From assembly GCF_001194135.2 (NCBI RefSeq), contig NC_068981.1, forward strand, positions 106,153,047-106,217,046: a stretch of DNA of 64,000 bases, given 5' to 3'. Below are positions 44,050 to 64,000 of the stretch, piece by piece. The notes under the pieces were generated by a model. That model was given only the letters and a program-made list of their open reading frames with translations. It was not told the DNA's origin and did not search any database. This DNA is from Octopus bimaculoides (lineage: Eukaryota). The first letter of the stretch is position 1. Each line of letters opens with the position of its first letter. Position numbers and translations under genes: made by a program.

Positions 44050-44957
44050 AAGTTCAAAGCTATGTCAAATTCGTCTTTATCTCTTCAGGCCGAGAAAACA
44101 TCTAACAAATTTGTTGGCCTTTATCCAAATTCGGCGCGAAACACTAATATTATTACCCAAGTTCAATATCTAAGTTAGTAAAATAAAATGGTTTTAAAAT
44201 GCAGCAGTTACGATATTGTTTAATTTTCTTAAGAAATTAACTATACCTACTTAGTTTATTAATTAAACATAAATGCTGTGCGTGTGTGTGTGTGCTTGAA
44301 TACGAAAACGATCGGCAAAATTCGGTAAATTCCGGTAATTCTGAACAATAGAAACAACATTTAATAAAAACGCGTACATGTTTCTCTCTTCTCCCTCTGT
44401 AGAAGGCGCGTAGATGAATCTCCTATATCACTACATATACACACACGTGTGTATGTATATGTCCCTCTATATTCATATGTAGGTATAAATTTGTTTAGGC
44501 GTATAGCTTCTCTCTGTGTGTATATATATATATATACTTTTTGTAATATTGCAAATGTGACGTGTATATGTGAGGAGCGGGAAGAGGGATTAAAGAAGTG
44601 AGAGAGATTCTAGGAAAAAAAAAACCCCGAAAACGAGGTGAAAGAAGGAGGAGTTTTAATGAGTGAGTGAAGGTAAGAGGTAAGACAGTGAGGGAACAGG
44701 ATTATTCTACGCCATATTTTCTCTCTCTACACACATGCTCTCTCGTATGGTTGTAGTTGAGATTCTTTTTCTGACTCTACGCATTTAGAGAAGAAAAAAA
44801 GAAACAACAAACTTATCCGTCACCTCAGCTCGTTATTAGAGCGTTGGGGAAAGTTTCTGCTTTTTTTTCTACTTTGCACATTAGTAGCAGAGTAATTTTT
44901 ATTTGAATCTAGTTTTACATCTTTATCAACATTAACCAAAAGTAAAAAGAGAAAAAA
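44050..44957 (+). promoter_or_regulatory. tra2 promoter / 5' UTR region
   Basis: CpG-retaining stretch directly upstream of the ATG; YY1-like CGCCATATT at 44710-44718; pyrimidine tract after it; purine-rich block at 44570-44700. TSS not determinable. Confidence 0.55.
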
Positions 44958-44978
44958 ATGAGTGACAAGGAAAACGAG
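44958..44978 (+). CDS. tra2: tra2 coding exon 1 (MSDKENE), phase 0 donor
   Basis: A-rich context gaaaaaaATG AGT GAC AAG GAA AAC GAG followed by GTAAGT at 44979; MSD start as in TRA2B; in frame with exon 2. Confidence 0.85.
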
Positions 44979-47685
44979 GTAAGTTTAACGACAACAAATT
45001 GATCTTTATTTTTTAGGTTTTATACAAAAAAAGATCTTTGGCGATCTTTCGATACCAGTACGAAATATCGGCCTTATTTATTATAAATGTAGTTATCTGA
45101 TTTCATATAATTTATCACTTCTAAAGGAAGATGTATACATTTGCATTTTAAAAGAATCGTATAGGCCATTAAATACATCGTATCAATTTACGGATGGAAC
45201 CCTGTCGAAAATGATAAATATTTAGTCTTTTCACTACTGAGAAATTATAAACGATCGAATGTTTTTTTTTTCTTTCGTTCGGTAGATAGAATTCTTACGC
45301 ATTTGTTAATTAAATATCCAGTGTCTTGTTTTTAGTGTTATCTTGCATGTTCTCTCACTCTGTACCCTTTCTCCATTTATTGATAGCTAATAAGTACATA
45401 ATTTTGCTACAAACATTGACTATTTTTCCATACTGAATTATTTCATCCAAGATTTTTTATCTCCTATTTGTAACGTAATAATAGCTTCAAAACCAGGCGA
45501 TAAGCTAGGTGAGCAGTTTCAACTTGTTGGCGCTTGACCGCCATTTCTAGCCTTACAACAAATATACTTATTGGCTTCGGTAAGGGAGCAATCCACCGCG
45601 TGTCGATTTAAGTTCTCTCATTTCTCAAGTCTTGCTAATTTTTGGCTAAGTTATCCAATATTAAAAATATTCTTAGCATGTTTTATATTGGCTTTTTTTT
45701 TTATCTGACAGTAAAAGGATTAAATAAACAGTTTTGTAATTAGTGTGACATACAATAAATGTGAATCGTGAAATTTTATCATAAAGCTCTTAGAATAAAT
45801 ATTAGCATTTTCATGTAAGTCTGTTTCGTTCGTCCCTTTAATAATGTACACGACTTGATATGATTGATAATGGCACATTTTAGGGATTTAAAGATATATG
45901 GGCATTTGAAATCATTCAGAAATATTCGTATTATATACAATATACGTACTTGTTCCATTAAATTTATATATAAGTAATCATTTTCACTAAAAGTAAATTT
46001 CTAACTTAGATGTTGTAAAAAATATATAAAATTAAACTAGTAAATCTGCTATTAGTAATAGATTTTGGGATTCTGCTAACAAAGCTTCCTGCATTAGTTT
46101 CTATGGCGGCAAAGAAAATGTACATGTGCAGGAATGACTTTAAAGGGTTAAGAATAATATGACTGAATTGAAGAAATTGTGACTTGATCCGGGATCGTGT
46201 ATAGAAGGTGAAACAATTTATAATAATCATTGAAAACATGTTCTATTTGTTACATTTTCTATTACAGCAGTGTAAGAAAAATATAAAGTATTTATCCTCT
46301 TGGTTGAACATGTAGGACCTGCATTTGTATGAAGTATGTGTCCAGATCATTATACGATAGAAATACTTGGATGCATATTTTAACAAGATAAAAGTGAATT
46401 TAACTTTTAACGGCCGACAAATAAATATATTGTAATGGTTAAAATAAAGAAAAATGGTTGGAAAGTTGGAAGGCCATGCTTTTTCTATATAGGTGTTTTT
46501 AATTGTTTGATGTCAGTCGCTAAGGAAGGGGCTTACTGTGTTCAATTGTTTTTATTTAATGCTGTATTTTATTTTAAAATATTTTGTTTTCTTGTTCCTC
46601 TTATTTTGATTCATATGTACAAATATTTTGATATAACGGTTGCAAAAATTTAAGCGTCGAAATCCTACATTTTTGAATCTAATATAGACGCATGTTTAAG
46701 AGAGGAGATGGAGTGCGTTTAAACAATCCATTGAATAACTGAACATGTATCTTTCGTGTGTTCAATGTTCAAGCCTGTATTGTTTTGTTAAAATAATATC
46801 GCTTTATTGTTTATATTTGGGTTCGTGTAAGGAATATTTAAAATTTTTGTATGTTTTACAATAGATATAATTGTGTTGAGACTAAATGTATCTTGTACTT
46901 TATTTTTTTGTTATTATTGGAGTGAATGAATTTTAATATAATATTTTTATTATAATTTATATGTTCAGAATGTGTGTGTGTGCAAAAATGATCTCAACTC
47001 AGAATCAACAGAGTTACCTGTATAATCAATCGCTGAAATTTTTGTGGTTGAGCTAGCTATTGATGCATTTCAAATAAATCATTTACACGTTTTAACTTGT
47101 GCAGCGCAAGTCTATACATGTCAGTTCATATTTTTTTATTCGTTCGAATTTGTTTATATTACGTAATCGGTTTTAGCTATTATATTTGATACTGCGATCA
47201 AAAGAGTTGTTTGCCACGGTTTTGTTTTGTAAAAGAAAAAGAAAATGCCTTTTAGCTTCTATGCACTATATTTAGGCGAGTTTTGATAGACTTTCTCTGA
47301 AAGCTCGCTTAAATTTCTTAAACTTAAGGATTTAAGCCTTGAAATTTTCCATAAACTCTTCTGTGCTGAAACCATCAATTGTTTTGGATTTTAGTTTCGA
47401 TGAAGGTGACGGGATCGAATTTCTATTTTTAGATATGCTTATATTTTGAGTATTAATAAACATTTTTTAAATGAGAAATTGAAATATAACTTAAATTATT
47501 ACTGACTTGTTCCAAGCAGCATTTTCTAAAGTGAAAGTACTACTACTTGAGTTTCACTCGAAACGAAGGGAGATAATTTTATTACTATAAAGTAAGTTAA
47601 AAAAAATTAAGTACTGACATAATGCACATGGTATTCTAAATACAGATTGTCATAAAATTTAATTTTAATCGCGCTATGTTTTATT

Positions 47686-47717
<32 letters not shown>

Positions 47718-50700
47718 TATACTCAATCGTAGTTACTTTCATGTCAAAGACCACTTTAATTTTGTGATTAAAATGACAAGAATAAGTCAAATAAGACATC
47801 AAAACTGAATGACCAGTTTGAATGATTAATTTACGTTATGTAAATATGTTGGAAATAAAAGATGTAAACATTAACCAAAATTTTCAATGTAAAGTTGATT
47901 CGGTAAAATTTCATAATCAAGAAAGTCATTTGAATATTTGATGATAGAGGATAGATGGCATTTGCTATTTGTGTAGTCTTCACGACGATTACGTTTGGGT
48001 GGGGATAACCATCAAAATTCTTGGTTAATGTTTACAAGTACACCGACACGAAAAAAATAGACTTTTTTTTTCTTTTTTCGATGACAGAGATTCTGAATAT
48101 GCCAAAATCTACGTGGAAAAATATGGAGATTAGGAATATGGAAAAAAGAAAATTAATTTCAAATTTTCTATGCGGAAACTCCAAAATTGATTCATACACC
48201 CTCACCACCCCATCCCGCTGTCTAAAAGTGAAAAATTAACGGCCTGTGTGTTTGTGTGCGCGCGTGCGAGTGAGCAGAAAATACACCGAAATATGTTTTA
48301 CGTACCTGTTACACCGAAATATGTTTTACGTACCTGTCGTATACATCAGTTTTGCATTTTCGCTTTAAAGGTAAACGGTTCTGAAAAAAGCAAACACAAT
48401 ATTCAATATGTTTGTGTTCTTCATTCAGCAAGAAAAACTTCAGGGGACTTCGTTCATGNNNNNNNNNNCCCCAAGTTTGTATATTCGAAATCTACATGAT
48501 ATAACACATTCGTAGAAAATTTCATTAAAACAATATCTATTTTTCTGAAAGTTATGATCATCCAAAGTCGGTGGGGCCGAAATCTGTTGTCATTCCTGGA
48601 TTTTCAGTGCATGGTGCTCACAAAATTGACCACAATCGCTCCAGAGAAGGGAAGATAAGCTTTTTTGTAAAACAGATGCTCCAGATCATTTCCAAGGGCA
48701 CCATGAAAAGAAATCTGAAAAATCTCCGTCTAAACGGAGAAATTCCAACTTGTTAGTGCTTCCTAACTCCGAAGTCGGCCTATACATGTATGTATAAATG
48801 TATATATGTATGTATCTAACTGTGTCTTTGTTTGACACCCCGTCAACGCTTATAACTGCTGTTGCTGTGCATTATTTACAATGGAGAGATAGGTATCCGC
48901 ATCGTGTTTGTTGTTATCACAACGTTTCGGCTGATGTACTCTCCAACCTTCATGTGTTCTGGTGGAATTTCGAACCCAACCCTTTATTTGACTAATGTAG
49001 TCTACTTCAATTCGTCTTAATTTTAAGAAAATGAATATTTTTTAATGAAATAATCTACAAATATACCGAGGACAGGAATTTTGGGGGTTATTTTTGAGAA
49101 CCGTTCCTCACTCGCTGGTGTTTCTGAACAAGTCCATAGTTGTATAGAATTTCATTAATAACATCCATTTTCTTGAAAGTTAAGGCGAATTGAAGTGGAC
49201 TCCGGTGAATTTTCCGAAATTCCCCACCTCCAAAATTAGGGCGTATCCTAATATGCCACATTTTATGCACTTAGAAACAATTCCTGGTGGACAAGGGGCT
49301 TTCACAGTATTCATATTAACTGCTGCCAAGAAGAATGGTTGGACCCTCACTTGTGTTCACATTAGGACAGCTCTCTCACATTTAGTAGCCTTTCATATTT
49401 GCAAGCCGTTCATTTTCACTTCTAGATAGCGGGATGGGGTGTATGAATCAATTTTGGAGTTTCCTCAGAAAATTTGAAATTAATTTCTCCATGTTTTTCC
49501 ACGTAGATTGAAAAAAAAAAAATTTAATTTTAAAATTTCGGGTGGAGAAGGGGGGGGAAGTTAAAATTTTGAAAACATGGATTTTGACATACTCAGAATC
49601 TCGTCACCGAAAACAGGGATCCGCTGAAAAAATTTCAAAACAAAAAGAAGGTCGATTTTTTTTTTTGTGCCGGTGTACTTGTAAACATTAACCAAATTCT
49701 TTTTTAGAACAGTAGATCTCAAGGTACATAAACCTATGAATAGTAAAATGTAAACAGATATTTGGTTCAAATACCCTTTTGGACAGGAAAATGCCGAGGG
49801 CTGTCGGTCCCACGGGCGCCTTTCAATTTTTTTTTTTAAATCTTAGTTTTTCAGCTTTACATGCTATTATTCATAGCTTTATGTACTTCGAGATCCACTG
49901 CTTCAATAAAATTGTCTCGAAAGTTTTTAAGTTCTGTCGTCAACAAAACTTAATATTGAAACTGTTGAAAGTTAGAATGAGTCTTGATTTTCCTTTTGTA
50001 GTTAATTGTATTAGCATGTAAGAAGTTAAGGGTCGAAACGCTTACCTTAGGGTTTCTTTAAGACCTGCTGTTTAGCTCTCCCGAGAGATTCTTGCCATTA
50101 TTTTATGTTGTTGCCTGTCTCACTGTTTTTGTTTTTTTTTGTCTTATTTTGTTACAGAGGAGCCGTTCAGCCTCCAGGGAATCAAAAATATCTGAAAAAT
50201 CTCACCAATCTGGTTCTCATAAGTCGGAAGCCTCTCGCTCCTATTCAAGGTCTCCAACTCCAAAATCTGCTCGTTCTCAGAGATCTGCCTCCCGATCTCG
50301 TTCTCGATCAAGGTCCCAGTCGCGTTCACCATCTCGTTCCAGATCTAGATCAAGATCTCGATCAAAGCATAGACACAGGAGATCATACAGCAGATCAAGG
50401 TAAATCTTACCATACACTAGTTTTTTCAAATAATGCTTGCTTAGTTCTATTATTTAGCATTTTCTTATATTTCTAAAATATAGTCCTCCAGTTTAAAATG
50501 TAATCCAATCGAAAGTAAAATTTGAACACTTTTCAACACTGCTGACAAAATGAACTTTTTCTCTAGAAGTTAATAAAAAGTTACAAACCTTTAAAGTTCT
50601 GTGATTTTACCAATCTGAAGTCTCCATTGCTGACATTTTCTTGAAAATGGTTTTCATCAGCATCAATGTAGAAAAAAAAAACATTCTGGTGGTTGAAAAA

Positions 50701-53700
50701 TACTTAAACCAAGTATATGATTATTAAAGAACATATGTTATTCCTGAAAATTGTACTTCAATAAAGAATAAATATAACAATGGAATTTTGAACACAATTT
50801 GGTAAATTGTTTTCAACTTCATGTGCAATCAATTTCCAAAGGTCTCCAAATTAACACAACTTATTTACCACTCTCAGTATTGGGCCAAAGCATTCACTCT
50901 CTACTGTAATATGTAAAATGGCATCATCTCTTTCAACAAATACATTTTCTCTTAAATTTTTGTCAAATTTTACTTGTTGAACTAAAAATAGATTGTCATA
51001 TGCTCCTTCCCCATATGTTTCAATTGCATTCTGAATCAAAAACTTAAGGTTTCTGTGGATCAGTTATATTATTTATTGATATATCTGTATATATATAAAA
51101 GTAGTTTTTGAACATGACAAAAGGGTCGTCTCTTTTCCTTGCTGGCATAGGTTTGATGGTTTGACTGGAGCTGCCAGATAAGGAGCTGTCTAGACTCCAA
51201 TTGTCTGTTGTGGCATGGTTTCTATGGCTGGATGCCTTTTCCGATGCCAATCACTTTACAGTGTGCAGGGTGCTTATTACATGGCACCAGCATGTGTGCA
51301 TTTACACAGTACTAGCATGAGTACATTTTATGTGGCACCAGCACCTGTAAAGGACAAGCCTATATGTATGGATGACAGCGTTTTTACTTGTATGTTAATC
51401 TTGTAAAATTGTTATCACTTATGCAGTAATGAAACCTGTTGATATTTTCATTTAAATATGAGTAGATTATGTCATAGGTTGGTAATAAAGTAAAAAATTT
51501 ACAATTATCAACTTTTTGTAATAGATCAAGAAGTCGAAGCAGGCGGTACTGTTCTCGTTCTCGGTCACGAACTCCTTACTCACAAAGACGTAGATAGTAA
51601 GTATTTTTAACCCTTTCGTTACCATATTTCTAATCATGTGTTTCAATTAATTTCTAATAGAATCATAAATTTAGTCTGGTTTCATTAAACAACTTTTTTA
51701 TTTATCAACATATTAATGTGATTTTTGGAAGATAATTTAACGAAAGGTTCTCAACCAATTCTATACCAAAATTTTTGTCACAAAGTGACTCTAATTACAG
51801 GTAAATTCAACAAAATATAAAATTATTTAAATTTTTGTTCAAACATCGCTATAGAAAATGGGTTATTGAGTACAACAAAATATTATTATAGAAGAGTTGT
51901 GCACATTACTGGATTCATTACTGTCTCTTTTGCCAGTATAAAATTAAAATCCAGAGCAGTACCCAGTATTTGATTCACAAATCTTCCAAACTTTGATCCC
52001 CCATTTTGTGGGCTTTCCTGGCATATACTGTCAAAAACGCACTCGGCCTTTATAGCCCACCATATCCTCATCTATAAACTGTTTTATATGCGTTTTGAAC
52101 ACAGTCAATGAGGGGTCTTAGTTTAAATAAGGGATCAAAGTCTGGTTCTCCACGTACTGGTGTACTGCTCGTGTCTCTTATATATATATATATTGAGTCA
52201 ATTTTAAAAACTGTCTTCGTCATTATACTTGAGACATATTCGTCTCCAAAGGGTCCATCACTACTCTAGTAATTTGTTATTCTAGGTAACTTTCTAATGC
52301 CCATAATAATATTTATGGCAGAATATGCTTTAATTTCATTCAAGTTTGTGGGAAACCACAAACTATCCCTTTTTTACGCTTTGTTTACATTCAGCGTAAC
52401 GGTTTGTTTCCACCGTAATCAATTCAAATAGGTACATCGGAAAAAGCAAAAAGAAATAGTCTAAAACTTTACTCTCCTGGGTAAGACTGGCTTGGTCCAG
52501 TTTCTTCAGAAAAATCACTGAAAGGAGTTTTTAAATTTTCACTCCATTCAGGTACTAATTCATTCTCTTTATCGCTATCATCGGAGCTCTCGGATTCACT
52601 GCTTTCATTTTCGGAAAATGAAACAGATTCATTATCAAATACCACGTGCTTTTTTTTTTCCCCCGGTTACAGAGTTAGATTTATCAAGGTCTTCAACGGA
52701 AAATCCTTCGAATTCTGACTCGCTGCTTGACAATAAAATTCATATCCATTTTTTTTGTCAGGNNNNNNNNNNNNNNNNNNNNNNNNNNNNNNNNNNNNNN
52801 NNNNNNNNNNNNNNNNNNNNNNNNNNNNNNNNNNNNNNNNNNNNNNNNNNNNNNNNNNNNNNNNNNNNNNNNNNNNNNNNNNNNNNNNNNNNNNNNNNNN
52901 NNNNNNNNNNNNNNNNNNNNNNNNNNNNNNNNNNNNNNNNNNNNNNNNNNNNNNNNNNNNNNNNNNNNNNNNNNNNNNNNNNNNNNNNNNNNNNNNNNNN
53001 NNNNNNNNNNNNNNNNNNNNNNNNNNNNNNNNNNNNNNNNNNNNNNNNNNNNNNNNNNNNNNNNNNNNNNNNNNNNNNNNNNNNNNNNNNNNNNNNNNNN
53101 NNNNNNNNNNNNNNNNNNNNNNNNNNNNNNNNNNNNNNNNNNNNNNNNNNNNNNNNNNNNNNNNNNNNNNNNNNNNNNNNNNNNNNNNNNNNNNNNNNNN
53201 NNNNNNNNNNNNNNNNNNNNNNNNNNNNNNNNNNNNNNNNNNNNNNNNNNNNNNNNNNNNNNNNNNNNNNNNNNNNNNNNNNNNNNNNNNNNNNNNNNNN
53301 NNNNNNNNNNNNNNNNNNNNNNNNNNNNNNNNNNNNNNNNNNNNNNNNNNNNNNNNNNNNNNNNNNNNNNNNNNNNNNNNNNNNNNNNNNNNNNNNNNNN
53401 NNNNNNNNNNNNNNNNNNNNNNNNNNNNNNNNNNNNNNNNNNNNNNNNNNNNNNNNNNNNNNNNNNNNNNNNNNNNNNNNNNNNNNNNNNNNNNNNNNNN
53501 NNNNNNNNNNNNNNNNNNNNNNNNNNTTATTTTCAGTTTAGCAGCTGCTGTGTGAGCTGTTGCTTTTCATTTTAACCAGTGTAGAATTAAAAAAAAAATC
53601 TAAGTTTACTTCCTTAGAGATTTGTGAACTTACCTTTTATGTCAACATCTTAGTTTTAAGATGCCACACATCTTAAATATAAGATCCTCATGTATATTAG

Positions 53701-56700
53701 TGCAAACAATGCTGCAATCATACTTTTGAATTCAGTTTCAATGTATTTGACTTTGATTGTTGAATATGTACACAGCACTAAATATTCTGGATTATGTAAA
53801 AAAAGAAAAACAAAAAAAACTATGATTAGGTGTATTTGTTTACTTTGTCTTAACATCAATGATACTGGATTTTAGGAAAATTCTTATTTCTATGTTATTT
53901 ATGTTGTTTGGCTTTTAAATGATAATTAGTGACTCACCATTAGCTATCTTAACTACTCGGTTAAGTATGCTAAAAGAGTAAACCCTAACTTAGTACCCTT
54001 AAAATTTTGTCACAACACAAATTTTAATAAATATGACCGTTTTTTTTCATGTGTGCATCAAATATGGCTGAAGCGGACATGATTAGCGAAAATAATTGGA
54101 ACTGAGAATATAGTGAAGATTTTAGAAGAATATGATTGGTTTCACTTCCAGTTTATTGGAACAATATTTTCAAAACAACTTGTGAATAATGAAAAATGGT
54201 GTCAACATACTTCAGAGTATGGAAGTGAAATTGAAGAAAACAAGGTTATGGGGGATCCTTCTTGGAACACTTACAAATATCCATGGCTTTAGAATTTCAA
54301 AGAATTATAGGGCCTATGCTCTTTGAAGCATTGATCCTGATTCGTGAGTATGCATCAAGTGCAATCCACTGATGTGCTCTTAATGTTTTAAGTAGTAATG
54401 CATTGAGGTAAACTGTTACACTAACTACATCTTATGACATTAGCAACTTTTTTTTTTTAATTGTGTGTTTGTGTGTGTGACTGGTACACTTATGGTTGAT
54501 TTCAGTCGTAAGAATTTTTACGGAATATTTTAAAAAGGGCTTGGTCTCTTCAGCATTAGGATATTTGAATGATAAGTTCATTCATGATTTGGCTATTGGA
54601 AAAAAGTTTTTTTATACAAAAAAAAAAAAAATGGTTTGGTAGTTAACAAAGTTTGTATGAAGAACTACAATTAATAAATATAACCACGATTGTTTTTCTA
54701 CTCAAGTGTGAAGCCATATTATGTAAGTAATCTTTATTGTATACTTACACCATTTTATACATCTTCATGCTGTATGGCTCATTGGATGATATTTCCATTT
54801 TAACAAGTGGTTTACAAACAATGTTTTTCATAGTTGAGAACATACCTCAAATATTTTCATGGGCAGTTTAGTTTCTTCACTATTTTTCCTTTCAGGACAA
54901 CCCTGAGCCTTCACGGTGTCTTGGTGTTTTTGGTCTCAGTTTGTATACACAAGAAAGAGATCTCAGAGAGGTTTTTACTCGATATGGTCCAGTCGAAGAT
55001 GTTCAGGTTGTCTATGACAGACAGGTATTATTTTATATTTTTCTCTTCACTAGTTTATGATAGGAAAATACAATCTGACATTATGTGGTTAAGTCAAAAA
55101 TTATACACTAATTTATTTGAACAAAAATGGGTTAAACAGTTACATAATTTTTCAACATAGGCTCCTTGTTTTTCGATGCTTGCTTATTCCATTGAAGAAG
55201 GTTTTCAGCTGGTTGCACCACTTGTCCAGTCATTTTAAAATTTCCTAATTCACTCTTACACACTTCTGCATGTTAGAGCTCTGTTTTCATATTGTACTGA
55301 AAACCTGTGATGAATTTCAGCATGTCAACATCTTCATACAAGAGAAAATCAGATCACTGATCTCTGTTTTTCCTTGGTGCACATGCCCAGCAGAGTGGCC
55401 ATGCTTACTCTGCAATACAAGTAAGAATACAAAGCAATTGCAGTCAAATTTTGGTTAGATAACCACAAGAGTACTATCTTTTAGTTTGTAGGTACGGAAG
55501 GTATTGTGGCTGACATAAAAGTTTTGGCAGAAATGCGGATAATTTTTTACCTTCCCTAGTATGTTTTTTATTGTAAATTGTAAAATACAATAGTTCTTTT
55601 GCAACTGGGTTCATATTTAAGTTTTTTGTTTGTATATTTCTAGCTAAAATACATTTCCAGTTTGTATAAATTAAAAGTCTAGATTCAGCTTAAAATTCTG
55701 AGAACAATGTTGAACATGAAATATACTAGGAAACTGGAGGGTGCAAATGTGACTGTATACATAGCTGAAACACTAACAATGTAGGTGAAGACACTAGTCC
55801 AGGTGTATCGGTGGATGAAAATAATTCATTTCAGAAGGAATTTAAAAAAGAATTTTGTAAAGTTTTCCCCTCTACATTATGCAATCTTGCTAAACATGTT
55901 AGATTGTTGTTTCAATTCACTGATATACAACATTCTTGACACTTTTTGATTATTGTTTGACAGAATTGTTATTATTGGGGAAATGCTTTCATTTGTTCTT
56001 TTACATTCTCAGTTCAAATCTCTTGGGTGTCAACTTTGTGACTATTTGTAATTAACACCTTCCACTCGAAAATTGCAGACCTTATGCCTGAATTAGAAAC
56101 TATTATTACAAGTGACTTAGTAAAATCATTAGGGTTGGAAAATATCCCTTACAGTATTTTCTCTGACACTTGCTTAGCTCACCTTGGCCTTTCAATCCTT
56201 TGGTGTTGATAAAATAAAGTGCCAGTCAGGTACTGTGGTCAGTACTAGTCCTTCTACTTAAGATTGCTGGCTTTTGAGTATTTTCATTATTATAACAGCT
56301 AAAATGAGATGGGTATCCTTGCTCTCGACTGTGTTGTATCTGCTTGGAATTAGATGGTCACATTGATTTTAGCCCTTCACAATTTGGTGTTTTAAAAAAA
56401 AGATTGCATTATAGATATTTACTATGTGCAAACCAGATACTGCTGCCCCTTAATGCCTGGCCTGCTATATCTGGTGTAACTTTCACTGAACTTACTCTAG
56501 ATAAACATTAAAACTCCAGTAATATCTTACCACCCTTGTGTTGTATACTATTTTGCGGGCTTACCTGATGTAGATAAAGGTATGTCAAGCCTTTATCAAT
56601 CAAAAATCTTTTTAGTTGGTAGTAGGACTTGGCATTATAGTGTTCACTATCATGCTATTGGTGTTTTGTTCATAGAAATACTGATCCAACTTCAAAAACC

Positions 56701-59700
56701 ATGTTAAGATTGTGATCTTGGATGTTGCCATATGGAATGAATTATTTGCAAATAGAAATGCCCTTTCTGGTATTTACAGTATGATAATTCAATCTGTCTA
56801 TATTCACGTAATGCATTACTTTTCACTCTTGTAGAATATTTGAATTGGAATTAAAGTGAGTCAGATGCAGTTTTATTATATACTGTTGGAAATTGAAACT
56901 GTCTGCAGTCCACCATGTGTTACCCTGGATACATTTTTGTTTTTATTTGCTGCATTGACAATTATTTCCATTCAGTCTCTAATGCTAAATCATAAATTTA
57001 AAATGGTCAGATAGAGACAGTCTGAACATGAAATTTAGATGTTGAAAAAGATGTAGTTGTTTCACTTTGTAGAATCAGTAATGCACTAATGCAGGCGCTT
57101 TGATCTTGAACATGGGCAGGAAATAAAGTATTAAAATGTCTGAGATGGAGCAGTTCTAGTTTTACTAAAGAAAAAAAAGTCAATGCATTTTGATTCATTC
57201 AAATTTTTTAAATGAAACCTTTATTAAGCTAGAAATTTTGTGTGCGTGCTTGCATGCACAATGAATGATGTCTGAAATGATTTTAAGAATCTTATGTATT
57301 CATTTTTCTTGTAGTCTGGCAGATCACGAGGCTTTGCCTTTGTGTATTTTAGAGCTACACACAATGCCATGGAGGTAAGTCATAATTCATGAATTCTGGA
57401 TAATCAAAACCAGTTAGCAGTTTATTCTAAAAATTTCATTTGGTATTGGCTAATATATTGCTGTAATTTTATAACTTTCACATGACTAGCTTGATTTATA
57501 CATTTTTGACTGATATGTGACCTGTAGATCATGTGATGATTCTCATATCTACAATTAATTTTTCAGTTGAGGATAGTTATGGAGACTGTTTACTTCTAGC
57601 ATGTTTAAATGCATTTACTTTCTGTTTATACTTTAGGTGTATCCATGTTAATTGTTAAAAGCTCCTATACAATAGGCTCATACTTAGGTATTTTTTTGTT
57701 TTTTATTTCAGGCGAAAGATAGGTGCAACGGAATAGAAGTTGATGGTCGAAGAATAAGAGTTGACTATTCCATTACAGAAAGAGCTCATACTCCAACACC
57801 TGGTATTTACTTAGGGAAACCAACTTCGTAAGTACCTTTTTACACCTAAACCTTTAATACATTGTTTTGCTTGATTTTTCAGTATTAGTTTTACAAGTTT
57901 GTTTTTATGTTGCTTCACTTGGTTCAAATTTAATGTTTCAGAGAAGGCAGAGGTAAACGTTCTCCATCTCCTTACTATCGACGCAGTGGAAGTCGTTACT
58001 CTCGGTCCCGTTCCAGATCATTTTCTCCCCGTAAGTTTTGTTTTCCTTAAATTCGCATGACAACTCCACTTGAATGTTCCATATGGAAATACTTTTGGAA
58101 ATGCTTATCAATGTGAAGTATGATAGACCCGTTATTTTAAACTCTATTGTTACCATATAAGCTTTAACTTGATGTGCTACGGTATTCTTGTATAGGCTTG
58201 ATTTTACTATTACTAACCCTTATTTAGTTTTTTGGATTAAAACTGCAAAAGTCATTTTACAATTTGTCACCTAAGTACTATATTAGAATTTTTATGCAAT
58301 GTAATTGTTCGGTCCAATAATTTGGTATATGAAAAGACATGCTGTTCAGTAAAGTGAAAGCTAAATGTTTGGATGAGTGAAATTTTGCCACATTTTAAAA
58401 TATATACTGTTAGTAAAAGTGACATCTGAACATTTAGAACTTGACAAATTGAAGTATATGAGCTCTCTGGCTTAATATCTCAATTATATATTAAAAACAA
58501 AAAAAGTTTTATATGAAATACGTTCAGTTTTGGCACATCATAGTCAGTAACCATTATGTTCGCAGTTTTAACATAGCTTTTTGTTTTCTAAGCTTGGTAA
58601 TGCTCGATATATTTTAAAAGCATTGATATTAAACTTGGCAGCTGCATTTTGGTAACAAAAGGGTTTTTAATAAATTTTGTTTGGGTTTCTAATGATTAAA
58701 GCTTATATTTTAGATGTCAAGATCACTAAATAAATCCTGTGTAGACAACATGAAAGATTCAGTGTTATGTGTATATTTATCAATGTACAAGGTTTTGCAA
58801 AGAGTGGAGGTTTCGGTTTCTATGCAAGTAGATTTTAAAATCTTCTATAGGCTGTTTTAGTTTGGCTGTTTAGATTTGGACAAATTGAATTAAATCTTTC
58901 ATTCTTTGATACCCCATATTGTAAGGTTGCTCTTCATGTGTGTGGCTGGAAGCATACCTGATTTTTCTATCCCACTGTCCCTTCATAAATGGACTGTTTT
59001 TTCTTAGTGATAGAGCTTACATATGCAGTGTCTAAGAGAGGTCATAATGTTCTGTGTACAAGATGTACTGCCGGTGTTCAATGCATGCCAATAATTTGAA
59101 ATCCACAGTCTAATCCATAATACTGAAAATTTGAGGATTTGTTGTACGAGTCATCTGTGCTCCAATAAGTTTGTTCTCCTGAGCACCTTCCAAATGCCTA
59201 TTACGTATATTTAAAAAAGAAAAAAAGAAACCCTGAATCTCATCAAGGTGTGTTAGAGGACATAATCTCCTAATTAAGTTCCTACAGTTTGGAACATTTC
59301 AGTCGCAAAAATTGAGGGAAATAATTGATTTATATGAAAACTATCATATACATTTTATCCAAATCAACAATACTTCTAAGAAGTCTATCTTAGGCTGCAT
59401 ATATTTGAAAAGCATCAGAAAGACTGGGTTTGGTTTCTACTGAAAAATTCAGAAAAAGATAATTGGAAAATGAAATAAAGCATTTATGCTTGTTAGAATT
59501 TTTCATTGCTATTCTTCCGATTTGTAGTTGCTGGGATCTTTTGTTTCATTTCTAAAAAGACAAAAATATCCCTTGAAATTCAGAGAGCATAAATTTGTCA
59601 TGGAAATGTTGTATAAAGTCACTTCCACTCATATAAAATTTAAATATAAGTAGGTAATTATGTTATATAGCAAATTAAATGAAAGGAGTAATCAAAAGTA

Positions 59701-61235
59701 CTTGTCGACAGCTTTCATATTATCACATGCATTTTCTTGTGCAGTTGTCAAAACCAATATTCTTTGCCTATCTAATCAAGATACATTTTTTTGTGTAATT
59801 TATGATTTACCTGTGCTCATAATTTTTTTTATTTTTATTCTGCTGCTCAGCTTTGTTTTTTGTACTAACCCATTAGCATTTAAACCAGCTAGATCTGGCC
59901 TTTCACACATACTTTACAATGTCATTTTTAAAATAATCAAATCAAAATCTCAAAGCTATGAGATAGTGCATTATCAATTCAAAACAATGTGAATAAACAA
60001 GCATTGCATTTGACAAAGTAATCTGAATGCTAAAGGGCTAATTGACCTTGTGCAAAGGCTGAATTTTGGTTTCTTAATCTAATAAAATTTGCAAAAGTGC
60101 AACTGCTGAGAATGATCCTAGTCTTTTTTTTCATCTCTATCTTTCTGGGTTTTGCTAATGTATGAATAAACAGTAAAGCCCAATTAAAAGCACTTATTAA
60201 CTGTAGGATAATTTTTCTTCACCCCAACATTTAGACCTTGTATTCAAATTTGTCGTGATTTAAAACTAATTTTTAATATTTAGATGAATTCAGTTTCTTC
60301 ACTCATTAGAAATATCAGTATTAAAAATATTCATGAAGGTAAAATGATTGTAATTATATATATCTGCAGTTACAAAGTGGAAAATTTTCTTATACTCTGC
60401 TTACTAACAATTTTGTTGGATCTTCATTTTCAGCTTATCTATTTAAATTAGTGGTTCTCAACTGGGCTCCATATAAGATTTTGTTTAAATTTATGTGCAA
60501 TAAAATTGGTTATAACTTCTACAATACACAAAAAATTTTAACTAAATACAATTTGTAATATATCCAATTGTGAAAATATAAATAGGATTTTATTTAAGCA
60601 TTTAATCACTATGGGGTCCATAGACAAAAAGTGGTTGAGAAACACTGATTTAAGTGGTCAACATTTTACTTAAAAAGCACCTAAGTGTAATTGTTACACA
60701 TGTTTGAATGTTATCTAAATATTTCTTGCAGGTCTATCTTACTGATTTAGATCCAAAATATTTGTTTTGATCTGCATGTAAATAGTGCCTTGCTTTTCTT
60801 GTCCTTTTTTTGTGTAAATAATTTGCATTAAATTATATATTCTACTAAAGAGGTCTAGGTTTTTGATACTTTCTAGAGTTTTCAAAATGTGCAATTAACT
60901 ATCCATTAAAAACAGGCATTCCCTTTCTAGCTTAAGGAATTGCATGTTTTTTTTTATTTTAATCAGTCGGTTATTTTTTCCTAAATGTAAAGAAAAATGC
61001 TTCCATCAGTATGTGCAGAAATCCATTGTGATTTACTGAAGTTCCAAACTAAAGCACTTTATAAAATTCTTTTCTAATGTTATTTTAGAAATTCAGTACA
61101 TTTTACTAAATATGTAATTGGCTTTAATTCCATTATGTAAAATTTTATCCCAGCCTGTCCATCTCCTTCTGTTATGTTGCTTCAGTGTTATTACATGATT
61201 CTCTTTGTTTCCCTTTTTCCTCAGGTCACTATTGA
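44958..61235 (+). CDS. tra2: Transformer-2 (TRA2A/TRA2B-like) SR-family splicing regulator; spliced CDS join(44958..44978,50158..50399,51525..51596,[exon presumed in gap 52763-53526],54896..55024,57315..57374,57712..57827,57942..58030,61225..61235)
   Basis: Manual splicing gives MSDKENE-RS1 domain ... [137 protein letters not shown]2 (LGVFGL), RNP1 (RGFAFVYF), the Tra2-specific linker HTPTPG and the RRSPSPYY-like motif closely match vertebrate TRA2B. All visible introns are GT-AG. Confidence 0.96.
48019..49700. mobile_element. ~1.7-kb non-coding element bounded by long degenerate inverted repeats, in tra2 intron 1
   Basis: 48019-48245 is the reverse complement of blocks within 49400-49700 (TTGGTTAATGTTTACAAGTACACCG; AATTAATTTCAAATTTTCT...GGAAACTCCAAAATTGATTCATACACC; CCCCATCCCGCT). 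Confidence 0.8.
48282..48337. repeat. Perfect 28-bp tandem duplication
   Basis: TACACCGAAATATGTTTTACGTACCTGT x2. Confidence 0.92.
50158..50399 (+). CDS. tra2: tra2 coding exon 2, RS1 domain
   Basis: Long T tract + TACAG acceptor (AG 50156-57); [15 protein letters not shown]...[35 protein letters not shown]; donor AG|GTAAAT at 50400, phase 2. Confidence 0.93.
51120..51400 (-). mobile_element. LINE 3' tail in tra2 intron 2
   Basis: Homology to the 19590/31010 family (GGCATGGTTTCTATGGCTGGATGCC). Confidence 0.7.
51525..51596 (+). CDS. tra2: tra2 coding exon 3, RS1 continuation (72 nt, phase 2-2)
   Basis: ctttttgtaatag acceptor; (R)[23 protein letters not shown]; donor TA|GTAAGT at 51597. Confidence 0.88.
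51607..51866. mobile_element. TTAA-type (piggyBac-like) MITE
   Basis: Begins TTAA-CCCTTT; ends in degenerate ATGGG-TTAT; no coding. Confidence 0.5.
51895..52762 (-). pseudogene. piggyBac (PGBD4-like) transposase remnant, antisense in tra2 intron 3
   Basis: Minus-strand translation across frameshifts and stops: SESEFEGFS... [24 protein letters not shown]...[33 protein letters not shown]...[13 protein letters not shown]...[46 protein letters not shown]. Confidence 0.88.
52763..53526. other. Assembly gap presumed to contain the missing tra2 exon (SPMS..RRRH-type) and the piggyBac 5' end
   Basis: Exon 3 ends phase 2 (TA) and RRM exon A begins phase 0; no suitable RS/SPMS exon was found in the sequenced parts of 51597-54895. 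Confidence 0.65.
54896..55024 (+). CDS. tra2: tra2 RRM exon A (RNP2)
   Basis: tatttttcctttcag acceptor; [43 protein letters not shown]; donor CAG|GTATTA. This frame is not in the supplied ORF track. Confidence 0.96.
55960..56290 (+). mobile_element. Two decayed SINE pieces in the tra2 RRM intron
   Basis: TTCTCAGTTCAAATC...CAACTTTG; CTTTCAATCCTTTGGTGTTGATAAAATAAAGTGCCAG. Confidence 0.55.
57315..57374 (+). CDS. tra2: tra2 RRM exon B (RNP1)
   Basis: tttttcttgtag acceptor; [20 protein letters not shown]; donor GAG|GTAAGT. Confidence 0.96.
57712..57827 (+). CDS. tra2: tra2 RRM exon C and Tra2 linker
   Basis: ttttatttcag acceptor; [38 protein letters not shown]; donor TC|GTAAGT, phase 2. Confidence 0.96.
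57942..58030 (+). CDS. tra2: tra2 RS2 exon
   Basis: taatgtttcag acceptor; (S)[29 protein letters not shown]; donor C|GTAAGT, phase 1. Confidence 0.94.
59865..60041. mobile_element. piggyBac-like MITE copy
   Basis: CTAA-CCCATT ... AAAGGG-CTAA; internal homology to 33879-34125. Confidence 0.65.
60449..60647. mobile_element. hAT-type MITE with 8-bp TSD
   Basis: TIRs TAGTGGTTCTCAAC / GTTGAGAAACACTG; flanks ATTTAAAT and ATTTAAGT. Confidence 0.8.
60732..60745 (+). other. Candidate alternative tra2 terminal exon ((R)LSY*)
   Basis: ctaaatatttcttgcag acceptor; C|GT CTA TCT TAC TGA; ATTAAA about 80 nt downstream. No transcript evidence. Confidence 0.4.
61225..61235 (+). CDS. tra2: tra2 terminal coding exon ((R)HY*)
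   Basis: Strong acceptor ctctttgtttccctttttcctcag; C|GT CAC TAT TGA gives SPRHY*, matching TRA2B SPRRY*. Confidence 0.85.
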
Positions 61236-61281
61236 GATGTTTTGTCCTATGCGATGAGCCTACAGTAAAAAGCAGCTCTTC

Positions 61282-61287
61282 AATAAA
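61282..61287 (+). terminator. Candidate polyadenylation signal AATAAA (second at 61465-61470)
   Basis: AATAAA hexamers about 50 and 230 nt after the tra2 stop; the second is followed by a T/GT-rich tract. Confidence 0.4.
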
Positions 61288-61609
61288 TGTACATAATTAT
61301 GGTGTAGTCAATATTTGTGCCTGTGAGGAAATTCCGAATAATTCTAAGGCAGAAATGCATCTTCCACAATTTATCATATCTTTCCCTCTATAGCCAGAAC
61401 CAAATATGTAGCTGTAGTTCTTTTTTGTGCTGTCTATTTCCCTGCTATACTGTTAACAACTTTCAATAAAGATCAATGGGAGTGTCTTAATCTATAGCAT
61501 TTTTTGTTGTTTTATGAAGCCAGGATCAAATGAAGAGTAAAAAAAAAAAGTAGACTGCAGAATTTTTGTCCCCAAAAATTAATGTTACTTATTCTTGTAT
61601 TGTATAAAG

Positions 61610-61893
61610 GTTATGAAGAAAGAAATGAAATGGGCTGGTGAAGAAAGAACTCTGAAATCAGGGGATTGAACGAGAAGAAAGAATGAACTGTGAAGAAAAA
61701 TCTGAATAGGCTGAATGAAAATCATGGAAGCTAAGAAAAATGAGAAAAATAATTTATAAAATAATAAAAAAAATATGAAGATAATGAGTTGGTGAATTAA
61801 GAAGTGGGAATGAGAAAATGGGTTTGATATGCCAAGATAGAAGTCTTTAGCTGTGTAAAGAAGCCAGAAGATCGCTTGGAATCGAGCAGATGG
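61610..61893 (+). other. Candidate AGAA-rich regulated (poison) exon of tra2
   Basis: Weak acceptor ttacttattcttgtattgtataaag; C|GT TAT GAA GAA AGA AAT GAA ATG GGC TGG TGA (stop 61639-41); about 30 GAA and about 15 AGAA by hand count; donor TGG|GTAACA at 61894. Confidence 0.5.
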
Positions 61894-63285
61894 GTAACAT
61901 TTTTATTCCAATTTTGATTTAGCTGACTGCTGACTATTTTAGACTGAACTGACATAGGATATTCTTGCTTGTCTTGTTTTGTTAAAACACAAGTTGCTAA
62001 TTTCTAAATTTAGGCTTTTAGTTGAACATTATAATGTTATATCACCTTCATTTAAAAAAAAATTTCTGGGGTCTTTATCAGATGTAAGTTACATTGCGGT
62101 ATGTATGGTGGTACCATTTCTGTAAATTTAAAAACATTCCCATTCTTTTAACTTATCGGTTCTTAATTCAAATATTGTAGATATGGGCACTTTTTTGACG
62201 CTTTTCAAGTTCACTGAAATTTTCTCCATTTTTTTTTTTTCAAACCTCATAGTTCTTTTAAGCTAAGAAAACCTGTGGTTTTGCTGTTTAGCAAGACTGT
62301 GTAATACTTTCTGGTTTTAATAAACTTATTAAAAGGATCTGGTGGTTATTATTCACACCAATTTGACATTGACACTTGCAAAATTAGATTGACCAAATTG
62401 GAAACAGTTGATCTATTAGTATTCCCTGCTCTAGTAAAATTTCGACTGGATCCTTAGTTAAGAAGAGAAAACGTTAGGTTCTATAGGTTTTGTTCTTTGC
62501 GGTATGGATTTACCTCCCATTACAGAGAATTATAGTGGAAATGGGTGTGTGCCTTACATGAAATGGAATATAATAGATGAGTGAACTTAGCAATATTGCT
62601 TGAAATGAAAGTGATGCATCCTAAGGTGAAAACTTTCTTACTGTAATAGCACTGAAACTTCAATTCTTTTTTTTTTTGTTTAAATTTCTGCTTTTATATG
62701 GTTACTTGTTTGCTTGTTTAGGGCAAGACTGTTTTCCTTTCATAATTTGTCAAACATTATACATTAAAGATAAAGATAATAACCATCTAAAATTAAGGTA
62801 ATTTGTTGCCTTATATTTAGTCATTTCTTCATTACAAAAGACAAAATCTAACTTTAGATTTGAGCACATTACATTTTCTATTTCAATCTAAAATTTTACT
62901 CCCACAATAACTTCAGCTCAAAATTTAACTCAGTAAGAGCCAAGACAATTTTTTTTATCACATTCGAATTATATTGCCTGTGATCTTTTTGCAGCAGCAA
63001 GTAAGAAACTTAATGATGAAGAACTATTTGTTAACGAAGACCCATCACTATTGTTGCCACTCCTTAGAGCTGTCTTTCTCCTTGTGAACAGAACATCACC
63101 TCATTACATTACATATCACGACACTTTGGATACAAAGCTGACTGTTATGTTAAGAATGAAGGAGATGGCAGTACTTAATTTACATACTCTAATGAAGCTT
63201 ATCAAAGAAGTACATAAATTTTTGAATGGGGCAAATTCTACATAGAAGTGAAAATTGGTCAGTATAAATATGAAATTTCTGTTTA

Positions 63286-63328
<43 letters not shown>

Positions 63329-64000
63329 TATATATATATATACCAAGTTCTTTGATTAACTCTAAATCTTGGCAATCTAGATATAAAATAGGTTGTTTGC
63401 TGAATGTTGACTTGACTCAACTAAATTTGAGATTGATAGTTGATATTTATTATCTTGAGTTACACTAATCTGCTGGAAACTTATATTGTTTGCTTTGAAA
63501 TGGATTTGTTAGAAGCAATGTCTTTTAACTTGGAGGTTCATACTTCAAACTCCTCCGCTAGAAAGCTTACCATAAAATACTGAAGTTGGCTGAAAAGTTT
63601 GCACTTTTGAAAGTTTAAATTGAAATTACTGTCCTGCTGAATATTTCTCATGTGGAAAATGTACAATGTCATTGAAGAAGATTTGGCTTTGATAGGAAAA
63701 TCTATTTGAAAATTAACAATCAAATTTAAGAAAGAAGGTAAGTAGTGGTGTTTCTCTGCATCATGCAGTGTATACTATAGTGGTCATTTTGGATTCTAAG
63801 TTACAACAGTTATTTAAAAATTAATGTTGTAAGTTCAAGTATTCAGTAACCATATATTAGACACAGCTTTGTAAGCTTTATTATAAATTGAAATGTTCTG
63901 TATTGTGTGTGAAGTTTCAAATGGCCTAAAGTGATTTGTTGTCAAATCTTTCAATTGTATGTGCAAATAGAATTCATTTCCATTGATTGCTTAATGTTTT

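Follow-up and report, generated by a model that had tools for sequence, protein, structure and literature searches.

A GAA-rich alternative exon at the 3' end of octopus tra2

The 64,000-nt stretch of Octopus bimaculoides DNA analysed here (assembly GCF_001194135.2, contig NC_068981.1, positions 106,153,047 to 106,217,046; hereafter the window, numbered from its first letter) carries on its forward strand tra2, the gene for the splicing regulator Tra2, and, near the 3' end of that gene, a purine-rich block of 284 nt at 61610-61893, which is the theme of this report. A first-pass annotation, made from the letters alone, had proposed the block as an exon by which Tra2 limits its own level. The block proves to be a genuine alternative 3' exon of tra2 with deep conservation, and we consider it somewhat more probable than its rivals taken together that it is an autoregulatory unproductive exon serving as a sensor of Tra2 dosage; what we infer for it is that Tra2 binds it, that its use depends on Tra2 dose, and what becomes of its RNA.

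The exons of tra2, listed with the other features in Table 1, were placed by aligning L001, a contig that was assembled from publicly available RNA-seq reads, spans the full-length mRNA and matches the window at 99-100% identity. The eighth, or RS2 exon, is the last common to all isoforms and ends in phase 1 as ..TCT CCC C/gtaagt at 58030/58031 (a slash marks an exon boundary here and below), a donor that serves both alternative 3' exons. L001 joins it to 61225, bearing out the proposed start of the productive exon, whose acceptor is strong (ttccctttttcctcag/G) and whose reading, C/GT CAC TAT TGA, gives RHY and a stop at 61233-35, the protein ending ...SPRHY. The 3' untranslated region (UTR) of L001 extends to at least 61442, and the conserved AATAAA at 61465-70, with a U/GU-rich element after it at 61500-14, suggests that productive mRNA ends at about 61490, which would make the GAA-rich exon start some 120 nt past the normal 3' end.

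The 5' edge of the block is a second acceptor for the same donor, the AAG at 61607-61609, from which the RS2 exon reads on as C/GT TAT GAA GAA AGA AAT GAA ATG GGC TGG TGA, or R-YEERNEMGW and a stop. This acceptor, the TGA at 61639-41, the junction 58030 to 61610 and its peptide tail had all been predicted from the letters; the coordinates held when the sequence was read, and the tail was found in RefSeq/GenBank proteins, in that O. sinensis isoforms X1 (XP_029643803.1), X3 (XP_029643805.1) and X4 (XP_036358186.1), like Argonauta hians X1 (GAB1597839.1), end in ...SPRYEERNEMGW or ...SRSFSPRYEERNEMGW, that is, in YEERNEMGW. Since these proteins end exactly so, 58030 to 61610 is an annotated isoform junction in two octopod genera. 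O. sinensis X2 and O. vulgaris CAI9715369.1 end in ...SPRHY, skipping the GAA-rich exon as L001 does, and the L001 open reading frame (ORF) with the predicted tail attached, a construct, matches O. sinensis X3 residue for residue. Inclusion of the exon replaces HY with YEERNEMGW and leaves RS1, RRM and RS2 intact, so that the two C-termini in octopod Tra2 annotations are explained by the two 3' exons. The isoforms themselves are already in databases; the GAA element and a regulatory reading of it appear undescribed.

The block had been credited, by hand count, with about 30 GAA and 15 AGAA, far denser than its flanks, and an exact recount gives 30 GAA, 15 AGAA, four GAAGAA and no TTC, with 71.5% purine. 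When both strands of the 64 kb are scanned in every 284-nt window, GAA averages 5.5 (standard deviation 3.0), which puts the block at z=8.1, the top count outside it being 18. Purine bias or base composition is an insufficient explanation, since 5000 shuffles of the block's own bases yielded a mean of 15.1 GAA (standard deviation 2.9) and a maximum of 27. Hexamers of the Tra2beta type (GAAGAA, AGAAGA, AAGAAA and similar) are enriched 15- to 40-fold over the window average. The weak 3' splice site and the exonic purine-rich enhancer, within about 300 nt, are both present: position -3 is A at the GAA-exon acceptors of Octopus, Argonauta, Sinanodonta and Lottia and C or T at the productive ones, and the pyrimidine tracts reach 69-75% at the former versus 81-94% at the latter.

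The possibility that the block is a dispersed repeat had been raised at the outset; blastn against the window returned only its self-match, Tandem Repeats Finder (TRF) reported only a 31-nt A-rich run and no tandem array, and a repeat of either kind is ruled out. Rfam gave no known RNA family for the region, only sub-threshold matches (mir-297, mir-1277) on a (TA)n microsatellite at 63285-63345 that are compositional noise. The dsxRE 13-mers TC(T/A)(T/A)C(A/G)ATCAACA are absent from the block, and their window-wide count is at chance level. Intron 1 (44979-50157), the position of the vertebrate poison exon, has no GAA peak (at most 14 per 284 nt), and a poison exon there was dismissed for octopus tra2.

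Conservation of the exon and of the exons beyond it

Conservation across cephalopods and other molluscs had been proposed as a check on the exon. Among cephalopods the genomes were those of octopods, and the window was compared segment by segment with that of Argonauta hians (Table 1), in which the exon and both of its splice sites are kept. The intron that follows the RS2 exon cannot be aligned, and conservation then runs unbroken from the productive exon into the block and stops abruptly 55 nt past its donor. The coding exons are 84-89% identical (the RS2 exon 87%), below the GAA exon itself, and further conserved islands lie at 62300-62350, around the AATAAA at 62319, and at 62650-63270. 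This pattern of identity is what a regulated alternative exon, its intron flanks conserved as well, would show, and not what an unconstrained 3' flank would. The 3' UTR of the productive exon (61225-61492) is likewise better conserved than the coding exons, shares its first bases with a cuttlefish-like transcript (L010), and is probably regulatory in its own right.

Beyond the cephalopods, an equivalent GAA-rich exon occupies the same place in the gene in bivalves and gastropods. A first homologue search had returned several relatives ending ...SRSYSPR and then K/E/R-rich tails, and one layout is common to five genomes of three mollusc classes (Octopus, Argonauta, Lottia, Sinanodonta): the RS2 exon is followed by a strong-acceptor exon encoding R(R/H)Y and a stop, and then by a GAA exon whose acceptor is a weak AAG and which closes with a G/GTA site. 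This exon is the only extreme GAA peak of its locus, with 36 GAA per 284 nt in Sinanodonta, where it sits 6.4 kb past the productive exon, and 27 in Lottia. Tails of the same kind occur in Sinanodonta woodiana (FEERKMKFEDRK...), in a Sinohyriopsis schlegelii 'transformer-2 beta' cDNA (FEERNLKLEEK...) and in Gigantopelta aegis RefSeq proteins, where X1 carries IEERNMKYLKNES (IEERN...) versus RY in X2; the Gigantopelta protein and the Sinohyriopsis cDNA show only the matching (Y/F/I)EER(N/K) tail. Mytilus isoforms end in RRY (X1), in K and a stop (X2) or directly in a stop (X3). Among transcript contigs that are mollusc-like by protein similarity (L002-L009), L002 and L003 join the RS2 exon directly to GAA-rich sequence, and L009 is the productive isoform of the sequence of L003 (99% over their shared 854 nt). 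The related exons hold 8.8-12.7 GAA per 100 nt, with the exception of L003 (5.2), and wherever a donor-like site was identified it lies 221-276 nt past the stop (244 nt in Lottia), with all frames closed.

At the nucleotide level, the match between octopus, Sinanodonta and L002 is limited to the first 16 nt or so, GTT(A/T)TGAAGAAAGAAA; whole-exon alignment across classes fails beyond this point, the remaining likeness being compositional. The tails, 0-33 residues long, have in common only their first codons, (Y/F/I)EER(N/K) or ..T GAA GAA AGA AA., and, since they are unconserved as peptides past the first four or five residues, selection acts on the RNA and not on the peptide. A homologue search with a query of RS2 plus a K/E-rich tail gave four uninformative matches only, and the 3' UTR of L004 showed no similarity to the downstream regions of octopus, Lottia and Sinanodonta. 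In the species of L004-L007, a second short GAA-rich patch (gaagaaagaaaactgaagagaagttctgaagagtcagaagac) lies at L004 2470-2535, in the long 3' UTR past the GAA block. Outside the molluscs, a Logan contig (P0058) whose Tra2 ORF resembles a cluster with Ixodes scapularis Tra2 ends in SPR/RAWKKEKSEEKGRW... (tail RAWKKEKSEEK...), a hint that a purine-rich exon may lie past RS2 in chelicerates too, and the 3' isoforms of a crayfish may point in the same direction (PMC7363937).

The proposed way out of the octopus exon, from a donor TGG/GTAACA to a candidate acceptor at 62994, is found joined in an O. vulgaris gene model. The donor, ATGG/GTAACA at 61893/61894, stands 252 nt past the stop, and the acceptor sequence TTTTTGCAG terminates at 62994, in a region (62901-63003) that over about 100 columns differs from Argonauta by some three mismatches and a short poly-T length difference. 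In silico joining of 61893 to 62995 opens a 97-codon frame that includes the ATG at 61890-92, and the downstream part of this frame has a single match among 5.8 billion proteins, the 'hypothetical predicted protein' CAI9715368.1 (P0134) of O. vulgaris, whose accession is adjacent to that of tra2 (CAI9715369.1). The protein begins MAASMKLNDEELFVNEDPS... (MAAS.KLNDEE), and there is no ATG in that frame upstream of 62995 in the genomic sequence; since M-A-A-S can be read only as ATG G/CA GCA AGT, 61890-61893 is joined to 62995 in the model. The model then passes the donor at 63209/10, continues with a 'KE' piece that fits AAAGAAG/GTAAGT at 63731-37, whose donor and flank are conserved in Argonauta, and finishes in an exon that in O. 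sinensis (L014 33702) lies some 5.5 kb beyond, outside the window. Such short pieces, 4 nt for the initial coding segment and 7 nt for one exon, would be typical of ORF calls on aligned transcripts rather than of ab initio prediction.

These downstream exons are taken as non-coding because of the look of their ORF. The 83 codons at 62995-63245 have no Pfam match and no homologue except the O. vulgaris model, their frame is shifted in Argonauta and substitutions fall 8:5:7 over the codon positions, without third-position bias, and a coding exon there was dropped on these grounds. CAI9715368.1 probably represents 3' non-coding exons of tra2 and not a protein, and its 'hypothetical protein' label very likely arose because an ORF was called on non-coding exons that lie downstream of the gene. 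The AATAAA at 62319 may serve as the poly(A) signal when transcripts read past the 61893 donor.

Proposed Tra2 dosage sensing and competing explanations

Tra2beta binds GAA-core motifs, AGAAGA being its top hexamer, and activates weak exons with multiple sites (PMC3240583), and in vertebrates it activates poison exons of both Tra2b and Tra2a and so limits its own level (PMC3240583; PMC11791180). In the mechanism that we propose, the donor at 58030 would by default, or at low Tra2, pair with the strong 61225 acceptor, and cleavage after the AATAAA at 61465 would yield productive mRNA encoding ...SPRHY. At high Tra2, the protein and its SR partners would bind the roughly 15 AGAA and 30 GAA sites of 61610-61893 and so define the exon even though its acceptor (AAG) and its donor (GTAACA) are weak; 58030 would then pair with 61610, the productive terminal exon would be lost within the intron, and the frame would terminate at the TGA. 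The exon might thereafter be joined to 62995-63209 and beyond, placing at least two and probably three junctions past the stop, with nonsense-mediated decay (NMD) as the predicted fate, or be read through as far as a distal poly(A) site, in which case Tra2 could retain the resulting mRNA, with its GA-rich 3' UTR, in the nucleus. Since both outcomes would reduce productive output, either would amount to negative feedback. The read-through form would have a feedback route independent of decay in the TRA2-dependent capture, by nuclear speckles, of RNA rich in GA and poor in junctions (PMC12629991). The structural inference of the first-pass annotation is right in every detail that could be checked, and its functional inference is plausible and now much better motivated.

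Several observations weigh against a self-limiting, unproductive exon and weaken the label 'poison'. Inclusion does not block the full-length protein, the GAA isoform being nearly whole. In O. sinensis, Argonauta and Gigantopelta that isoform is annotated as an ordinary coding one, it is the form cloned as cDNA from a unionid mussel (Sinohyriopsis), and it is assembled in five runs of one species (L004-L008) with SPR and a stop running directly into GAA-rich 3' UTR, four of the five (L004-L007) as contigs of about 3 kb, while L003 continues through its donor-like site; so frequent an annotation, cloning and assembly is unlike strongly degraded RNA and argues for at least one stable form. By a rough position weight matrix (PWM), the donor GTAACA at 61894 scores 3.2 versus 7-12 for the three tra2 donors that were correctly placed, and it ranks only sixth of the 27 GTs; the proposed donor is top-ranked only in Sinanodonta, and donor strength alone is weak support. 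The two junctions come from different species and separate models, the stop at 61639-41 lying 252 nt before 61893 and the step from 61893 to 62995 being known from the O. vulgaris model, which is separate from the models of the tra2 coding exons. The 16 differences from Argonauta within the exon hit 4 of 90 GAA and 12 of 194 non-GAA positions (p=0.78), and, being evenly spread, they indicate that the whole exon is constrained and not the motifs alone; motif-specific constraint was rejected. To our knowledge, NMD that depends on the exon junction complex (EJC), with its 50-nt rule, is established in vertebrates and not in molluscs. Because of these points we place autoregulation by the GAA exon only slightly above an even chance and keep a tentative second place, well below it, for a plain alternative last exon.

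Such an exon would swap the last residues and the 3' UTR, with tissue- or stage-specific effects on stability, localisation or translation, and would involve neither decay nor self-regulation, Tra2 or other SR proteins acting perhaps simply as constitutive enhancers of a weak site. The annotations as a coding isoform in the three genera, the Sinohyriopsis cDNA, the 3-kb mRNAs of L004-L007, in which a long 3' UTR follows the GAA block, and the read-through in L003 all suit it, as do the conserved AATAAA at 62319 and the 3'-terminal isoforms reported for crayfish tra-2 (PMC7363937). It sits less well with tails that are not conserved as peptides and point to selection on RNA, or with an exon that is internal in at least some transcripts, as its conserved donor flank and the junction 61893 to 62995 of O. 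vulgaris show, and it leaves unexplained why, in five genomes, the gene for a GAA-binding protein holds the locus's only extreme GAA cluster. Two acceptors, 61225 and 61610, are used from the donor at 58030, the proximal AATAAA at 61465 and the distal one at 62319 are both conserved, and the exon is also spliced onward.

A third account, which we judge improbable, has a separate non-coding transcript start downstream with the block as its first exon, tra2 being spliced into it as an occasional by-product of read-through. The O. vulgaris gene CAI9715368.1, annotated from the end of the block to more than 5 kb downstream with an apparently non-coding ORF, would fit this; but the conserved 5' edge of the block is the 61610 acceptor and not a promoter, it is used in three of the four O. 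sinensis isoforms and in Argonauta, the junction from RS2 to the GAA exon recurs in bivalves and gastropods, and conservation is unbroken from the productive exon into the block. We find it scarcely credible, finally, that the block arose by chance as low-complexity sequence, belongs to a dispersed repeat or is just the far end, left unspliced, of one long 3' UTR: the genome is AT-rich and the block is contiguous with conserved 3' UTR in octopods, yet the z of 8.1 in a single-copy sequence without tandem array, the 94% identity where introns are unalignable, the annotated splice junctions at both ends and the 6.4 kb that separate the Sinanodonta block from its productive exon speak otherwise, the junction and conservation data already contradicting this account.

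An autoregulatory GAA exon would have its nearest counterpart in the exon-2 poison exons of vertebrate TRA2A and TRA2B, which are likewise alternative exons of a few hundred nucleotides within the Tra2 gene itself, with dense GAA/AGAA sites, all frames closed, weak splice sites and a conservation exceeding that of the coding exons. Activation by Tra2 protein and limitation of its level have been demonstrated there (PMC3240583; PMC11791180), whereas the octopus case is built from sequence and gene models. The octopus exon follows the last common coding exon, past the normal poly(A) signal, whereas the vertebrate one lies between exon 1 and the RS1 exon, and the octopus protein is essentially complete; on two criteria, gene position and protein truncation, it departs from the vertebrate poison exon. 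The likeness is one of anatomy and presumed logic, alignable homology having been neither shown nor sought. SRSF2 (SC35) and SRSF1 are reported to autoregulate by splicing in their 3' UTRs (Sureau et al. 2001; Sun et al. 2010). As proposed for octopus, the gene's 3' end is the site of feedback there, and splicing of an extra exon or intron past the stop destabilises the mRNA without truncating the protein; in those genes, however, the normal stop is kept and becomes 'premature', whereas octopus tra2 would use another terminal segment and stop, the productive exon being skipped within an intron.

Female exon 4 of Drosophila doublesex (dsx), an alternative 3' exon whose use depends on Tra and Tra2, resembles the octopus exon in its weak, purine-interrupted 3' splice site and in a cluster of enhancer Tra2 sites within about 300 nt inside the exon; unlike it, the octopus exon has no dsxRE-type 13-mers, belongs to tra2 itself and is the distal, not the proximal, of its pair, and, in contrast to dsx, we know of no Tra partner in molluscs. 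Retention of the M1 intron in Drosophila tra2 is a further case in which Tra2 limits its own expression through the splicing of its own pre-mRNA (PMC3240583), although there the removal of an intron is repressed, through intronic sites and in the male germline. The read-through form would fit 'interstasis', with its multivalent GA-rich RNA of long exon and few junctions, TRA2-bound and nuclear, but that collective loop has been described for coding GA-rich regions of human mRNAs and not for a 3' exon of tra2 or for molluscs (PMC12629991). For tra-2 of the crayfish Cherax quadricarinatus, 3'-terminal splice isoforms have been reported with no GAA-rich element or feedback role described (PMC7363937), a comparison made here without that report's sequences. 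Full-text searches, with most subscription journals outside their coverage, returned no paper linking mollusc tra2 to a poison or GAA-rich exon, and Lareau and Brenner (2015) do not mention Tra2.

Why the poison exons of splicing factors are so conserved, and how they arise, are open questions that have been studied almost only in vertebrates. Here an invertebrate counterpart in the same gene family, at a different position in the gene, can be traced through cephalopods, bivalves and gastropods, and its anatomy is unusually clear: the proximal terminal exon is strong, the distal one is weak and dense in the motif of the factor itself, and a conserved donor and non-coding exons follow downstream. 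If its dependence on Tra2 is true, the feedback logic would be older than the vertebrates or easily reinvented, and, the protein being untruncated here, the gene would be a test case for separating feedback based on NMD from feedback based on retention. A bolder and rather doubtful extension is that a GAA-rich, Tra2-sensing 3' exon is an ancient device, at least pan-molluscan and, in view of the chelicerate-like tail and the crayfish isoforms, possibly protostome-wide, so that self-limitation predates the vertebrates and the vertebrate exon 2 was relocated or reinvented; the octopod copy would then be under extreme constraint, like the ultraconserved poison exons of vertebrates.

Feature coordinates and further observations on tra2

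Table 1. Features of tra2 and its 3' region in the window, and of the corresponding loci of Sinanodonta and Lottia in their own coordinates.
Feature	Position	Strand	Identity to Argonauta	Basis or remark
tra2 exon 1 (E1)	44850-44978	+		L001 alignment
tra2 exon 2 (E2)	50158-50399	+		L001 alignment
tra2 exon 3 (E3)	51525-51596	+		L001 alignment
tra2 exon 4 (E4)	absent from window sequence	+		L001 445-554 (...YSRSRRDGYNDRRRGYYRTHCRSPMSSRRRLGGSRVSE)
tra2 exon 5 (E5)	54896-55024	+		L001 alignment
tra2 exon 6 (E6)	57315-57374	+		L001 alignment
tra2 exon 7 (E7)	57712-57827	+		L001 alignment
tra2 exon 8 (E8), RS2 exon	57942-58030	+		L001 alignment, sequence reading
Intron	58036-61161		unalignable	about 55% in forced alignment
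Productive acceptor region	61180-61225		91%	
Productive terminal exon and 3' UTR	61225-61492	+	94.0%	L001 junction 58030 to 61225; conserved polyadenylation signal
Gap	61493-61579		82.8%	
Weak 3' splice-site region of GAA exon	61580-61609	+	93%	ttacttattcttgtattgtataaag/G; A at -3; 69% pyrimidine at -20 to -5
GAA-rich alternative exon	61610-61893	+	94.4%	motif counts; start set by YEERNEMGW tails; closed in all three frames
TGA ending GAA-isoform frame	61639-61641	+		SPR-YEERNEMGW and stop; 252 nt upstream of exon 3' end
Weak donor GTAACA and 55-nt intron flank	61894-61948	+	87%	conserved; conservation ends abruptly at about 61949
Sequence past donor flank	61949-62228		about 31%	
AATAAA in small conserved island	62319-62324	+		hexamer and flanks kept in Argonauta, surroundings not
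Acceptor region ending TCTTTTTGCAG/	62901-62994	+	90-100%	highly conserved; identity per 50-nt bin, 62900-62999
Downstream non-coding exon	62995-63209	+		joined to GAA-exon donor; ends GAA/GTACAT
Putative micro-exon AAAGAAG, or end of longer exon (uncertain)	63731-63737	+		'KE' residues and phase of P0134; strong donor AAG/GTAAGT
Sinanodonta RS2 exon, end	15663			
Sinanodonta productive exon	18644			cacag/GTCGCTATTAG; RRY and stop
Sinanodonta GAA exon	25068-25447			380 nt, 46 GAA; acaaaag/GTTTTGAAGAAAGAAAAATG, GTTAGATG/gtaggt
Lottia RS2 exon, end	11109			
Lottia productive exon	11876			tag/GTCGTTACTGA
Lottia GAA exon	13300-13563			264 nt, 26 GAA; tttaaag/GCATCAAGAAAG, ATCTTTG/gtaatt

The RRM exons of the octopus gene are about 74% identical to human, and the window is 89-95% identical to O. 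sinensis DNA. Since exon 4 was found in O. sinensis (L014 17580-17720) and in Argonauta (L013 15976-16116), it is placed in the N gap of the window at 52763-53526. An alternative 5' extension of this exon encodes SRSYSRGRYSPYYY in isoforms X1 and X2; O. sinensis X4 is without the residues of the exon at 51525-51596 and uses the SRSYSRGRYSPYYY segment instead, a pattern that points to more alternative splicing in the RS1 region.

A 2015-era O. bimaculoides model (UniProt A0A0L8H7Q9), 100% identical to the window over its aligned part, joins 57827 to 61225, skipping the RS2 exon and reading the terminal exon out of frame; this is either an isoform made by rare exon skipping or an artefact of the annotation. 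Its start, MVSTYFR/DNPEPS, falls in a conserved non-coding island within tra2 at 53977-54492, with the ATG at 54197 and a donor at 54217/8 joined to 54896. The island is 84.8% identical to Argonauta amid unalignable intron and has the second-highest GAA density in the window (18 per 284 nt), a secondary peak that recurs in O. sinensis and Argonauta; it is a candidate for an internal regulated or poison exon, or for the start of an isoform lacking RS1.

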